Positions 33,941-39,993 of a stretch of DNA of 64,000 bases are shown here, one piece after another. Every line of letters starts with the position of its first letter. Position 1 is the stretch's first letter. Origin of the DNA: Eutreptiella sp. 'Long Island Sound 2002' (Eukaryota > Protista > Euglenida); the NCBI GenBank assembly GCA_964036045.1, contig OZ038379.1, forward strand, positions 7,688,001-7,752,000. Reading direction: 5' to 3'. Under the pieces are notes generated by a model that was not told the origin of the DNA, made no database searches, and saw nothing but the letters and a program-made list of their open reading frames with translations. Both the position numbers and the translations under genes were made by a program.

Positions 33941-36061
33941 TACCTTTTGGTGGTAAAACATTGATCCTGTGCCCTTGGTTTCCTACAAAGGAAAAGTGCT
34001 TCCATAAATAGTCAAATATTTTTGGATTGTTCCTTTTTCTGAAATGGATTCCGAGGAAATAATACGGTCACCACCAACCGTATTACTTGGGTGAGTATCC
34101 CAGCCTCTGCGTGCGCAGTAGGCACGCAGTGCCCACGTAGTGCGCACACAGTGCAAGAACTTCCCCTTAGATTGGGAGTCAAGCCATTGATGTATCAAAA
34201 TGAATAGGCTTTGCAATCAAGAATGTCAATGTGTTGATATGGTGCTTATTTGGCACGCAGGCAAGGAACCCAAGCCAACCAATTTATGCACTACATTGGA
34301 TTACAATGTCTACATGAATGGCTGAATGGTTGTTTGAAAAGTTTCCCCATGGGTTATTTTCAGTGCATTGGGCATCTTTTAGGCTAAAATGTCGCCGACC
34401 AATGCTATACTAAGGGGGCGCATTAAGCGCAGTGTGCGCGCTGTGCAACTATTTGGGCGTCTAGCCGTACTAGAGACCCATACTTTGTGATACTAGGGGC
34501 ATCATTGTTGCCCCTAGCATAGGTTTTGATGCTTCTTCCACATTGGGGATATGGCATTTTGGATTTTCACCCACTTCCACCCTTTTTCACACTTTTTTGC
34601 TCATCTCCACCATGGACTCCCACATTTTGGTGTGGGCCCTTGAGTTGGGGTGGCGGACTCCCTGGTTTTTGCTTGACCACAGTCGAATGCCCTATGCGAG
34701 GCCGCATCATGCTGATGAGGATGCGTGGTTGTACCACAAGTGGAAACTGGAGGTTGACGTGGATTCCCTCGTTCAAGCCACTTTGCCCCCCGGTCCAGTT
34801 GAGGATGAGGTGGACACATACGAGGCTTTGGCACTAGCTGGTAGGGTGAGTGAGCTTTCAAATGCCACCACTCCGGAGCATTCTGATTTTGTACTCAGGT
34901 GACAATTGAACAGAAAGGAGGATATATGTGTGGCTTTCTGCATTTTGCATAATGTCTTATGTGAGCGGAAGGTTGCTTGCATTTGTCATCAGCTAGGGTA
35001 GTTTGGGTGTCCTAAATTTAGGGGCATTTGGAAGGGGTGTGCCTGGGGGTTCTTTAGGGAGGACCTAGTCTAAAAGTCTTGCGCAATGCGTGCGCAGTGC
35101 AAGGATTCCCCCTAAGCAACCAAGGGTGATGCTCCTTAATATGCTTTCACACCACCAATGTGCTCTAGATATCTGAGAAGGAGGGGTTATGTACTTTGAT
35201 TCCTATCTGCTTTGGGGAAATCAATATAGCAGTGCTTGCATCGCCACTTTTAATTGTGTTTGCTCATCCTTCTAGTGGTACTTGGTACAACAGTAGCGCG
35301 CCGGGCGCTTGCTAGGCAAACACTCCCTCATTGTCCTACAAAAGTTATTTCTTGTGCATGAGGCCTGCTACTAGAGGTATTGCAGCAATTTTCTCCAGGT
35401 TACATTGTCAACGGGGCACATTTGCTAGCCGTGCCTGGGATTGTTCTGTGTTTCAATAACTGGACGGCACAGCACCAAGTGCCCACGAAGCTTTCCAAGG
35501 CAAACTTGAAGAAGGCGGAGAGAATGCCTTGAAAATTGTGCACAAGGCAGAAATCAATTCTGCCTTGTATGAACTGCTTTTTTTTGCCTTTGCATTATTT
35601 GTTTGCCTTTGGGGGCAACAGATTTCAAATGGTCAGCAAGAACATCAACATTTTGTGTGGGTTTACTTACATGTGTCACAGACCGATCCATGGGCCTGCA
35701 AGATGCCAACACACCGTGCACACACCATAATCCTGCCAATACATCCTCACATGCAGTGCACAGGCACCAGTACGTCCTACAGACAAAAAGTGTTAGGCAC
35801 GACGCAGAAGGCAAGAAATGACCCGGATTGCGCAAATATTTTTTTGGCAAGTTTCAGCACCAATCTGCAAAACAAAATTTTCCGTACAAAAATTTCCCCT
35901 CCTGAAACACCCAACTGCACTCGTGACTTATGCAAATCATCCTGCAACAATCTCGGTATCTGATTGTTTTTGTGTGGTGCGGACCACAGAGAGTTGATGT
36001 TCGGTTGTGCTTGCTTGTGCATCAACAACTCGTGTATTTGTTCTTTCCAAAAGACAGAGAC

Positions 36062-36568
36062 ATGGCAGCAAACTACCCACCGCATGAGCATGGGGAACAT
36101 CGGTCTGTTGAGCAGCGGGGTCTTGTCCAAGACTTCTTCGTGCCCATTGACGAAAGGAGAGCACCCCGTGAGAATTTGGCTCGGCGAACTCAGGATGCTG
36201 ATACAAACTTCTCGGAGACCGAACTTCAAAAGCCCGTCGAACTCTTCAAGCCATCTCCTCCTCGGCACTATGGCTATGGGGAACTTGCTTTTGTGGTGGC
36301 CCAGGCCATCGCCATTTTGTTTTTCGGTTTATTCACACAATTCTCTGACGAGATCCAGCCCGGCACATCCATCAATGAAGCTGACGCCAAGGATGTTGTC
36401 CAAAATCTGTATCCTTTCTTCCAAGATGTTCACGTGATGATCTTCATTGGTTTCGGCTTTTTGATGACTTTCATCAAGACCTCCATGTGGTCGGCACTGG
36501 CCTTCAACTGGATCATCTCAGTTTGGGCTTTGCAGTGGGGCATCTTGAGCAACGGCTTTTGGCATCAG
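36062..36568 (+). CDS. Rh50: Exon 1 of Rh-type ammonium transporter (Amt/Mep/Rh family)
   Basis: ATG 8 nt after ttgttctttccaaaag. Contains YPFFQDVHVMIFIGFGFLMTFIK, a Rh hallmark. Donor cag|gtacca at 36569, phase 0. Confidence 0.92.
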
Positions 36569-36652
36569 GTACCAGTCATTCTGGGGGGTGTCAGGTCACC
36601 CCTCCGCCCCCCTTGTCCAGTCCCCATTGTTGATTGATCCCTGAGGGATGAG

Positions 36653-37044
36653 GGAACCATCACTTTGGTCATGTTCCAAGGACCAGAGGGCACAATGGGC
36701 AAACAAACGCCCGCGTACTTGAAGGACATATTTCCGCCAGGTACGCCCAGCAGGGTTTTTTCTCTGTCTTCTCATAGCAGAATTTTTTCACAACAACAGA
36801 CTTCTTTTCTCGTTGCCCCAGTGGCGTGGCACTTTCTGATACTGCATGAGCAGATGGCAGGTTACAGGTGAGTTTCAAGTATACGTCCCGCCACCACGGG
36901 TGGTGTGCGGCCCAGGTACCGCACGGGACAACATATGTTGTACTTACACTGTCATTACTGATCCGGCCCGTCTGGCCGAGCACTTACGAAGAACTTGTAA
37001 GTCTGAGCAAAAAAGAAAAGGAACCATCACTTTGGTCATGTTCC
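36653..37044 (+). mobile_element. Intronic insertion flanked by a 25-bp direct repeat (TSD-like) with an A-rich 3' end
   Basis: GGAACCATCACTTTGGTCATGTTCC at 36653-36677 and 37020-37044. The insert ends ..GAGCAAAAAAGAAAA. Confidence 0.7.
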
Positions 37045-37206
37045 CCTGGGGGTGTGGGGGAACCGTCGTGCACAAGGAGGCACTGGACAAGGGGGCTGGG
37101 GGGTTGTGTGGGCGCTTGCTTGGCCTTGGTGCATGCTCTGCTCTGGTGTTTTGGAAGGGTTGCCCATGTTACACAACGGCTGCCAAACCCTTTGATTGGC
37201 CCTCAG

Positions 37207-38171
37207 GTGATCGGTGGGACCACGTGGCACAAGATACCCCTCACCATTGAGAATCTGATCATTGGGGATTTTGGGGCTGGTGCTGCCATGATCACGTTTG
37301 GGGCCATCCTTGGCAAGTGCAACTTGCAGCAGCTGTTCTTCTTAGTCTTCTGGGAGATGTTCCTATGGGGTTTGAATGAATCCATCGGAGTGCAAAAGTA
37401 CAAGGCAACCGACATGGGAGGCAGCATGTTCGTTCATGCCTTCGGAGCCTATTACGGTGTTGCTGCCACTTGGTTCTTCCAACCCAAGCGCACAGCTGAG
37501 AGCAAAAACTTGCAAGACGGATACATCTCCGAGGTGACGGCCCTCCTGGGAAGTATCTTCTTGTGGATGTACTGGCCATCATTCAACGGCGCGCTGGCTG
37601 TTGGTGCCGCTCAGCACCGTGTCGTCGTCAACACTGTGCTTTCTATTGGGGGCAGTTGCGTCGGAGCAGCCTGTGTTGCTCGATGGCTATTCGGCAAGCT
37701 GGAGATGGAGATCATGGTCAACGCCACCCTTGCAGGAGGAGTGGCCATTGGATCGGCCTCCGACATCATCACTGACCCGTGGGCCACCATGACCGTTGGG
37801 TTCTGCGCAGGAGCATTCTCTGCTTTCTCGTTCCAAAGAATTGGGCCGTTTTTGTCCAGAACAATCAATCTGCAAGACACCTGCGGGGTCAACTCTCTTC
37901 ATGGCATGCCGGGCATCCTGGGGGCTATCGTCAGTATTATTGCCATCGCAATGTCCAATAGCCAGGGGTTCCCAAGTGACTACTTCCCTAAGGTTGCAGC
38001 TGGAGGCAGTCTCGGTGACCAGTGCGCAGCGCAAGCCTACGCTCTGCTGACCACCCTTGGAATTGCCGTGGCTGGAGGTCTCAGTGGAGGCTTCATTGCA
38101 AGTCTACAGCCTTGGCACCCAGTGCATGCGCTGTTCAGGGACGATGACCACTTCTGGGAAGTGGTGAACAG
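37207..38171 (+). CDS. Rh50: Exon 2 of Rh-type ammonium transporter
   Basis: Acceptor cctcag|gtg. Motifs DMGGSMFVHAFGAYYG (first pore His), FLWMYWPSFN, NATLAGGVAIG, DTCGVNSLHGMPG (second pore His) and FRDDDHFWE. Donor aacag|gtacgg, phase 2. Confidence 0.95.
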
Positions 38172-39479
38172 GTACGGTGCTTCGTGTGGAGGTGACCTCC
38201 CTCTAGCCAGGTGCGACCATTTGGTAACAACACGTTTGGTGCCTATTCGGTGTCTTTCTAACCTCCACCAATGCTTCATCTTTCAATGAGCTTTTACACC
38301 CTGTTGCGAGGAGAGTTTGGCAGGCGCAACAGTGGTCGGTCAACTGTTGTCCCATGTCCTCCTCAGCAAAGGGCTGGGTGCAGTGAACGGGGGGGGGAGA
38401 ATTATGCGGGGGGAATTTTCCGCGGGGAAAATTCCGTATTTCAACTTGGTGTGGAATTTTCCAGTCGTTTTTTGAGGGGAGGTGCCGAATTTTCCCCATG
38501 CGGAATTGTGCCTGTGAAAGCCACCGTAGGACCCGTTTGGATTTTTTTCTTGGCATGATCATGCTAAAAGGGGGGGCTAATGTGTGCTGGTGTCTCATCA
38601 GCAGCAAGGCGCAAGCTTGTGGGTATGCTCTGCAAATTCTCTGGCACTGAGATGCGATGTTTACCGCCACTCGTTGGTTTCCAAAATTTCAAGGATCCCC
38701 CTTTGCTTCCAATGCACTCAAGATTTGGGAGGTGCGGAATTTTCCCCTTGATTTTTTGGGACAGGTGCGGAAGATTCCCTGTGCGGAATTTTCCCCCGCC
38801 GAAAAATCCCTGTACAGAACCTCCCCCCCCCCCCCCCCGGTATGTCTTTCAATGCCAACTCCATTTTCCTTGAGTTGTTAGTTCCCGTTGATTCAATTTG
38901 TAGCCCTGTTTTAGACTGCACAGTGCAGGTACGCGTTTTGGCAGGCAGTAGCAAGCATAGCTCTTCACAATGAAATGTGCACAAGGTGCACAACTCACCA
39001 TGCACTTTACACATGGGCGGAAAATAGGCCAAAAAAAAATGAGCATTCGCCTCTGAGGTGGTCCATGGTGGATTTGCGATCAACACACACTTGACCCAAG
39101 GGGAGGGGGGCGTCTCACATGCTTATTTTGTGAGATATCTGTCCCGAAAAATGTTTGCACTCATCAGGTGCGCCAGTGGTCTGCACTGCAGCATCACCAG
39201 GTGCACAGGGAGCAGGAAGGCGGCAATCCTCACGTCTCGTTTCCTTCAGGGTACTCTCCTGTCGCAGTGAAAGGCGCCTATGGCAATGTCAGTGTAGACA
39301 CCTTGTTCTGCTGTGTAGTGTGTTTGTATTGTGCCTCCTGAGGACCAGGGCTTCAAGCATACATCCGCATCCCATAGCGGGGTATGCTTGGGGACAACCC
39401 CCTCTACTTACGCACATCGTTGTCCATGCCTTAAATGCAGATCCATGCCCTTGCTGCCATTGCCTCACATTTCTTCCAG

Positions 39480-39993
39480 ATACCCTCCGGACTTTTTGAT
39501 TGGCTCCGATGAGACCTACGACGAGGCCAAGGCTTCGTTTGACGAAATCCGGGGGGCACTCGCTCTGAAAGCCAAATATTTGGGTGGGGATTTGGATCGT
39601 GGCATTGATCTGCTGGTCAATGAGATCTGGAATGATGTCTGCGAACCAGGTCAACAGAACATGAGCCGTGAGCAGTGCCGTGTGTTCCTCCAGACCTACG
39701 TCCAAGAAGCCAATCCCAATTTGGTCATTAGTGATGCTGCGTTCAACCAGATCTTCCAGATCATCGACGTTTCGGATGACCGACGAGTTCAGAGGCAAGA
39801 GCTCGCAAACTTCATCAAACGGACATCCGCAGAAACAAGGCACGGCAGAGAGAAGGCGCACACCTCAGACCTGTTGTACCCTGTCGTTAATGTCTCGACA
39901 ATACCTCCTCCAGCCATGCCGTACTCCCCCCAAGTCCCACTCTACAATACTCCGCAGGCATCACCTGCCAACTACAGCCAACATTACCACTAA
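39480..39993 (+). CDS. Exon 3 of Rh gene: EF-hand-pair-containing C-terminal extension
   Basis: Acceptor cacatttcttccag|a, phase 2, giving N-R-YPPDFL in frame. Contains a degenerate EF-hand (IWNDVCEPGQQNMSREQCRVFL), a near-canonical EF-hand (FQIIDVSDDRRVQRQELANFI) and a Pro/Tyr-rich tail. About 661 aa in total. Confidence 0.75.

Follow-up and report, generated by a model that had tools for sequence, protein, structure and literature searches.

A euglenid Rh-type ammonium channel gene with a predicted EF-hand pair in its cytoplasmic tail

The activity of the trimeric Amt/Mep/Rh proteins is controlled by their C-terminal region, which is located on the cytoplasmic face; AmtB, plant AMT1 and fungal Mep2 are the established cases. 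The known control through this region proceeds via phosphorylation or partner proteins, such as GlnK. The C-terminal region of plant AMT1 is regulated by CBL-CIPK23, where the Ca2+ sensor is a separate protein acting through phosphorylation, and anammox bacteria possess Amt fused to a signalling domain such as a histidine kinase. Here we describe a gene of the Rh branch from the euglenid Eutreptiella sp. 'Long Island Sound 2002', the third exon of which encodes a tail with a predicted pair of EF-hands. The gene occupies positions 36062–39993 of the forward strand of a 64,000-nucleotide stretch of contig OZ038379.1 (assembly GCA_964036045.1, positions 7,688,001 to 7,752,000), which is referred to below as the window and corresponds to C2:7.69–7.75 Mb of the 2.28-Gb genome. 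The C-terminal region is likewise the control point in the plant AMT1 proteins and anammox Amt fusions, and in plants it has a link to Ca2+ signalling. However, unlike in plant AMT1, the sensor-like domain is placed here within the channel chain, and the channel belongs to the Rh and not to the Amt branch.

Transporters with an EF-hand module of their own in the same chain are represented by the mitochondrial carriers SCaMC/APC and aralar, and EF-hand chains of SCaMC-1 are among the matches of our profile searches. In these carriers at least four EF-hands form an N-terminal domain attached to an unrelated carrier fold, whereas the Eutreptiella protein is a trimeric channel with only one pair of EF-hands, placed at the C-terminus and having no more than one working loop. 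The solved Rh proteins, i.e. human RhCG and RhAG and N. europaea Rh50, share with it the twin histidines, the conserved Asp and Phe motifs and, past the last helix, the ..WE. end. Whereas the known tails of Rh proteins are short and lack a recognised fold, a 120-residue linker and EF-hand pair is found here.

The gene consists of three exons in one frame. Exon 1 (36062..36568) starts with the ATG at 36062 and comprises 169 codons for a cytoplasmic N-terminus of ~70 residues and the first Rh membrane helices, seen as hydrophobic segments at residues 70–96 and 116–143. It is followed by intron 1 (36569..37206; GT..AG, by direct reading of the sequence) and by exon 2 (37207..38171), which ends in phase 2 and encodes the main Rh membrane domain. 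Between the Rh part and the tail lies intron 2 (38172..39479); it is of the GT..AG type with the donor GTACGG and the acceptor TTCTTCCAG, and splits the codon AG|A for Arg. Exon 3 (39480..39993) encodes the cytoplasmic tail of 170 residues and ends with the stop codon TAA (39991–39993). All searches described below were run exon by exon; one of them used the open frame 36868–38286 and was scored on its exon 2 part only. A sequence-only reading of the window had earlier proposed the joining of the Rh part to an EF-hand exon. All coordinates that it gives were reproduced on direct reading and recomputation, and its phase-2 intron at 38172–39479 with in-frame joining is confirmed.

Judging from their sequence, exons 1 and 2 encode a complete Rh-branch channel of the Amt/Mep/Rh family. 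The Pfam family Ammonium_transp (PF00909, cut-off 23.2 bits) matches exon 1 with 30.3 bits (E 2.3e-7, residues 104–167) and exon 2 with 167.8 bits (E 4e-49). The PDB yields six matches at E<=1e-10, all of them Rh proteins, namely RhCG, RhAG, RhCE and three chains of N. europaea Rh50, the best solved match being human RhCG (3hd6, E 4.8e-63). In the RhCG alignment ..DmGGSMfvHaFGAY.. and ..LHGmPG.. match, which are the sites of the twin pore histidines. The first histidine is located in HAFGAYYG (37435..37458), aligned with the His motif of RhCG and RhAG, and the second in SLHGMPG (37894..37914), aligned with NLHGIPG of RhCG. The pore-entrance Asp/Phe motifs are also conserved, as DF of the first helix of exon 2 and LFLWMYWPSFN. 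The Rh homology ends after the last membrane helix with FRDDDHFWE (38134..38160), which aligns with the end of the RhCG core, ..VYWEM; tail-less relatives from euglenids terminate 4 residues further on. The claim of a complete Rh membrane domain with both pore histidines is thus backed by Pfam and by the RhCG alignment. The predicted conducted substrate is NH3/NH4+ and possibly CO2. The C-terminus of Rh proteins is cytoplasmic. Since exon 3 follows the last membrane helix, this topology places the tail in the cytoplasm; a hydrophobic segment was looked for in exon 3 and none was found.

The joining of the tail to the channel is, in our view, very probably real. A search with exon 3 among 1.84 billion representative proteins retrieved 27 relatives at E<=1e-3, several of which are contiguous with an Rh C-terminus. 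In six fragments (P0003, P0004, P0006, P0007, P0009 and P0015) the Rh end ..HALF[KR]DDDHF.E.. runs directly into the tail motif YP..YL.GGDE.YDE.K. These unspliced fragments align without a gap with the window junction ..DDDHFWEVVN-R-YPPDFLIGSDETYDEAK, so that the junction 38171|39480 agrees with homologues that have no intron at that point. P0040 (576 aa) and P0033 (570 aa) are full-length Rh proteins with the same tail. They are encoded on contigs L025 and L026, which carry C4A4 repeats at the start, G4T4 repeats at the end and one gene each with a TGA stop; by these features the two contigs are complete gene-sized macronuclear chromosomes (nanochromosomes) of ciliates. In one more relative, on L018, TAA and TAG occupy conserved positions as sense codons, so that it too is of ciliate origin. 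A word search with the ciliate tail (P0040:453-576) retrieved two proteins only and added nothing on taxonomy. Two further environmental contigs with Rh and EF-hand parts, L027 and L028, have 3' untranslated ends with a repeated unit of ~60 nt, GACAAGGGAGACCG...GAGCGCCATGAGAACAGGA.

A diverged paralog in the Eutreptiella genome itself gives the same picture. It is located on C13 at ~573–607 kb (572638-606964; L013, L016, L019–L021) and one of its exons (595698-595425) covers both the Rh end and the initial 41 tail residues, with no intron at the junction. The Joint Genome Institute (JGI) contig L017, the source of the relative P0003, maps to C13 at 100% identity in four blocks (596665-596646, 595698-595425, 590560-590353 and 573185-572638). 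Since these blocks are spliced, L017 is a transcript of the C13 paralog, and the introns in the 3' part of this gene are ~0.9, 4.9 and 17 kb long. As the C2 copies have an intron at the junction and the C13 paralog has none, the intron was gained or lost between the paralogs.

The tail also follows the phylogeny of the channel. In a tree of 87 Rh domains, the root of which is not fixed, the tail-bearing Rh proteins all group together in a single clade of 20, which has the support of 100 in the Shimodaira–Hasegawa-like approximate likelihood ratio test (SH-aLRT). The clade takes in P0043, where the tail is present, and P0046, where it is divergent; both were mislabelled by a simple tail pattern. 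A tail-less group (Euglena longa P0030, P0034, P0035, P0036, P0041), the members of which end 2–6 residues past the DDDHF.EV motif, is nested in the tail-bearing clade. One gain and one loss of the tail is the simplest reading of these sequences under an unfixed root. The closest named Rh protein is that of E. longa, and the nearest matches to it in the Eutreptiella genome are the tail-bearing copies at 65% identity, with none closer. Euglenids and ciliates share a distinct Rh subfamily, of which the gene is a member. The fusion is thus supported by four independent lines, namely six contiguous fragments, the one-exon arrangement in the C13 transcript, the ciliate chromosomes and the single clade of the tree.

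Three near-identical copies of the gene are present on C2, at 7.72, 16.98 and 19.27 Mb. The other two are 88–96% identical in DNA to the window copy over the exons and parts of the introns. In all three the length, frame and stop of exon 3 are kept, and the donor and acceptor of intron 2 are identical, with intron 2 being 858 and 866 nt long in the other two copies. Conservation is higher in exon 3 than in its flanks, and the exons of all three copies are free of stops and frameshifts. The ratio of non-synonymous to synonymous substitution rates (dN/dS) between the C2 paralogs is 0.22–0.34 in exon 1, 0.016–0.031 in exon 2 (18–19 synonymous versus 1–2 non-synonymous changes) and 0.23–0.43 in exon 3, where most amino-acid changes are found in the disordered C-terminal end. 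These values indicate that all three copies are under purifying selection. The conservation of exon, frame, stop and splice sites in the paralogs, together with the 27 relatives, is more than would be expected by chance. Elsewhere in the genome, C10:922391-922890 and C4:161386086-161386295 hold Rh-like fragments with in-frame TAG stops, which are probably pseudogene remains.

The tail itself starts with a conserved linker (residues 1–37, 39481..39591) with the motif YP..[FY]L.G.DE.YDE.K and a subsequent helix (residues 20–33 in the model). It is followed by EF-hand 1 (residues 38–77, 39592..39711), composed of the model helices 38–53 and 63–77 around a degenerate loop-equivalent (residues 54–65, 39640-39675). 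EF-hand 2 (residues 85–121, 39733..39843) has the model helices 85–95 and 105–121 with a short bridge in its loop DVSDDRRVQRQE (residues 96–107, 39766..39801). The remaining Pro/Ser-rich extension (residues 122–170, 39844..39990) is predicted to be disordered, with the predicted local distance difference test score (pLDDT) of 43–52; it is present in diverged form in the C13 paralog and missing in the ciliate homologues.

The assignment of the EF-hand fold rests on profiles, a structural model and structural matches. The profile A2, built from the alignment of 15 Rh-linked tails, retrieves from the PDB at E<=0.05 EF-hand chains only, i.e. an Entamoeba calcium-binding protein (CaBP, 4e-6), secretagogin, calbindin D9k and S100A5, the last with both hands covered. 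A wider profile that includes free EF-hand proteins has the best PDB match at 5e-11. In the AlphaFold2 model of the tail pLDDT is near 80 for residues 21–120, the helices span residues 20–33, 38–53, 63–77, 85–95 and 105–121, and bridge residues are present in both loops. Foldseek and VIA-align return only EF-hand proteins for this model (S100A4, S100A6, S100B, calmodulin lobes, the calpain PEF domain and ciliary EF-hand proteins), with a template-modelling (TM) score of 0.67 by target, Z of 8–9.6, which is middling on the scale of the tool, and a root-mean-square deviation (rmsd) of 2.2–3.9 Å. The calmodulin N-lobe, e.g. 3uct, is matched with rmsd of 2.2 Å over 72–74 residues. In the ESM Atlas, too, nearly all of the closest named clusters represent EF-hand families. 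By these three lines of evidence the predicted tail is an EF-hand pair; in layout it is S100-like, with a dead first loop and a second loop that keeps its ligands. The earlier claim of one degenerate and one near-canonical hand is supported.

S100 proteins likewise combine a non-canonical and a canonical hand, and S100A4, S100A6 and S100B are among the top matches (TM 0.67, Z ~8). However, their sequence identity to the tail is only 8–22%. In addition, the pseudo-hand of S100 proteins binds Ca2+ through backbone atoms, and nothing comparable is indicated for loop 1 of the tail. The C-terminal EF-hand region of polycystin-2 is also a pair of one non-canonical and one canonical hand.

Loop 2 is the part of the tail where Ca2+ might bind. 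It has Asp1, Ser3, Asp5, Val8 and Glu12 with Arg at position 6, and fits a PROSITE-style EF-hand loop pattern. The sequence D-V-S-D-D-R-R-V-Q-R-Q-E and the absence of Gly6, both claimed from the sequence alone, agree exactly with our reading. The loop is identical in the three C2 copies except for one V/I swap, and in about half of the relatives it is fully canonical (DVNKNGRCSKQE, DLDNNGSIDQGE, DGNGNGMISKEE).

We suggest that the locus encodes a three-exon Rh channel with an EF-hand tail and that this copy responds to Ca2+, to which we give a probability of about 45%. In the mechanism that we propose, Ca2+ binding to loop 2 would change the shape of the pair. The reshaped pair would then shift the linker against the cytoplasmic face of the channel, and the shift would either open or close the pore or recruit a partner. 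Given the C-terminal control in the Amt/Mep/Rh family and the strongly conserved linker, the regulation of the pore or of a partner is by analogy the likeliest role of the tail. That the tail is a true Ca2+ switch, which opens or closes the Rh pore, we regard as rather doubtful.

Several results weigh against the Ca2+-responsive fusion. Firstly, no transcript-derived protein of the C2 copies is present in the protein collections searched. Secondly, every Pfam match to EF-hand families is below the curated cut-off. In the EF-hand 2 region of exon 3 the scores are 17.8 bits for EF-hand_7 (cut-off 30), 15.3 for EF-hand_6 (25) and 12.1 for EF-hand_1 (25.4). The same holds for every Rh-linked tail tested, as six of the eight relatives scanned match EF-hand families below the cut-off and the other two (P0033 and P0155) have no match, which is the reason why the precomputed annotation of the relatives gives PF00909 only. 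Thirdly, alignment with the canonical loops of free EF-hand proteins places C, P and Q at loop 1 positions 1, 3 and 12, and loop 1 by its sequence should be unable to bind Ca2+ in the usual way in any of the Rh-linked tails. Loop 2 of this copy has Arg in place of Gly6, and it is degenerate in the C13 paralog (ELGSDSLIHREE), P0033, P0039/P0155 and P0068, so that conservation across the whole family does not extend to Ca2+ binding. Within the tail, conservation is strongest at P2, G8, D10 and E11 of the linker, with W50 and A87 next, and not at the loop ligands. Finally, the complex prediction for the channel part of P0040 with its own tail has the score of 0.00, which in itself is evidence neither way.

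The points on the loops and the linker lead to the alternative that survives best, namely that the fusion is real and the tail is an EF-hand-shaped structural or regulatory module independent of Ca2+. We consider this quite possible, at a little short of even odds. Such a module might hold the cytoplasmic face, pair the subunits, or bind a partner or the sorting machinery, e.g. at the contractile vacuole, where the Rh protein of Dictyostelium is reportedly located. Contractile vacuoles are present in both euglenids and ciliates, and passages of Dictyostelium papers reportedly name Rh50 alongside contractile-vacuole terms; by this analogy, a contractile-vacuole role of the protein is possible. 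The dead loop 1 of every member, the degeneracy of loop 2 in several of them including the C13 paralog, the conservation centred on the linker, W50 and A87, and the Arg at the position where Gly6 is normally needed are all in line with a Ca2+-independent module. However, the fully canonical loop 2 in about half of the members suggests that Ca2+ binding is probably ancestral. Moreover, the window copy keeps Asp1, Ser3, Asp5 and Glu12, and its loop stays unchanged in the three paralogs while nearby residues have changed.

A further alternative is that exon 3 is not joined to the channel in this copy, so that read-through past the donor at 38172 yields a tail-less Rh protein, or exon 3 belongs to a separate trans-spliced gene. 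Tail-less Rh proteins indeed exist in euglenids (E. longa P0030 and P0034–P0036, which cluster with it, all ending just after DDDHF.EV), and the read-through frame of the window copy stays open for 39 more codons up to the stop at 38287–38289. The scan of metagenome contigs with exon 3, from which entries belonging to the genome of the window may be missing, gave no relative, and the only match of the word search with exon 3 is a genomic open reading frame of a paralog. Nevertheless, we find this alternative improbable. The junction codon and frame match the intron-less homologues without a gap, a single exon and a single mRNA of the C13 paralog contain both parts, and the donor, acceptor, frame and stop are kept in three of three C2 copies with exon 3 more conserved than its flanks. 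Exon 3 also has no Met of its own at the start of its conserved part. Least credible of all is that the locus is a decaying segmental duplicate with no working protein: the three copies at 88–96% DNA identity, the transposon-like inserts in their introns and the Rh fragments with in-frame stops elsewhere in the genome would fit it, but no exon of the three copies has a stop or frameshift, and exon 2 has the dN/dS of 0.016–0.031 with 18–19 synonymous against 1–2 non-synonymous changes.

Some features of the locus stand apart from the fusion of channel and tail. An upstream in-frame ATG at 35930 (35930–36061) shares the frame with the proposed start at 36062. An alternative acceptor of intron 2 at 39440 would add 13 residues that are found in no homologue and was rejected. 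Intron 1 contains a 342-nt insert (region 36653–37044) without counterpart in either paralog; its two sides are marked by a perfect 25-nt direct repeat (36653–36677 and 37020–37044), which is unusually long for a target-site duplication. Near both ends of the same intron there is a 28-nt inverted repeat (36597–36624 and 37079–37106) with 82% complementarity, which, in an intron of the GT..AG type, recalls the end-pairing of euglenid non-conventional introns. Intron 2 carries an element of ~450 nt (38386–38839) with 43-nt terminal inverted repeats (38389–38431 and 38790–38832). One end carries a G-run and the opposite end a C-run, and GCGGAATTTTCC-like repeats are found inside the element. Since the 19.27 Mb paralog lacks it, the element looks like a recent insertion similar to a miniature inverted-repeat transposable element (MITE).

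The combination of an Rh channel with an EF-hand tail is apparently undescribed. No such fusion was found in the literature searched on Rh and ammonium transporters with EF-hand or calcium, ciliates and Euglena, with the UniProt/InterPro architectures being outside this search, and neither a paper on Rh50 evolution nor a 2024 review of Amt/Mep/Rh proteins mentions EF-hand or calcium. Routine domain annotation misses the architecture because every EF-hand match is below the curated cut-offs, and such proteins may well sit unannotated in ciliate proteomes.

Last, we consider what the gene would mean for the family. If the tail were a Ca2+ switch, the euglenid and ciliate subfamily would be the first in Amt/Mep/Rh to be gated directly by a second messenger. 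The flux of NH3 or CO2 would then be tied to Ca2+ signals, for instance to contractile-vacuole cycles, to ciliary or flagellar responses or to chemotaxis to ammonia or CO2. The conservation of Rh with the EF-hand tail in two distant groups of protists makes this a clear and cheap hypothesis to test, and it may show how unicellular eukaryotes couple the movement of ammonia or CO2 to Ca2+ signalling.

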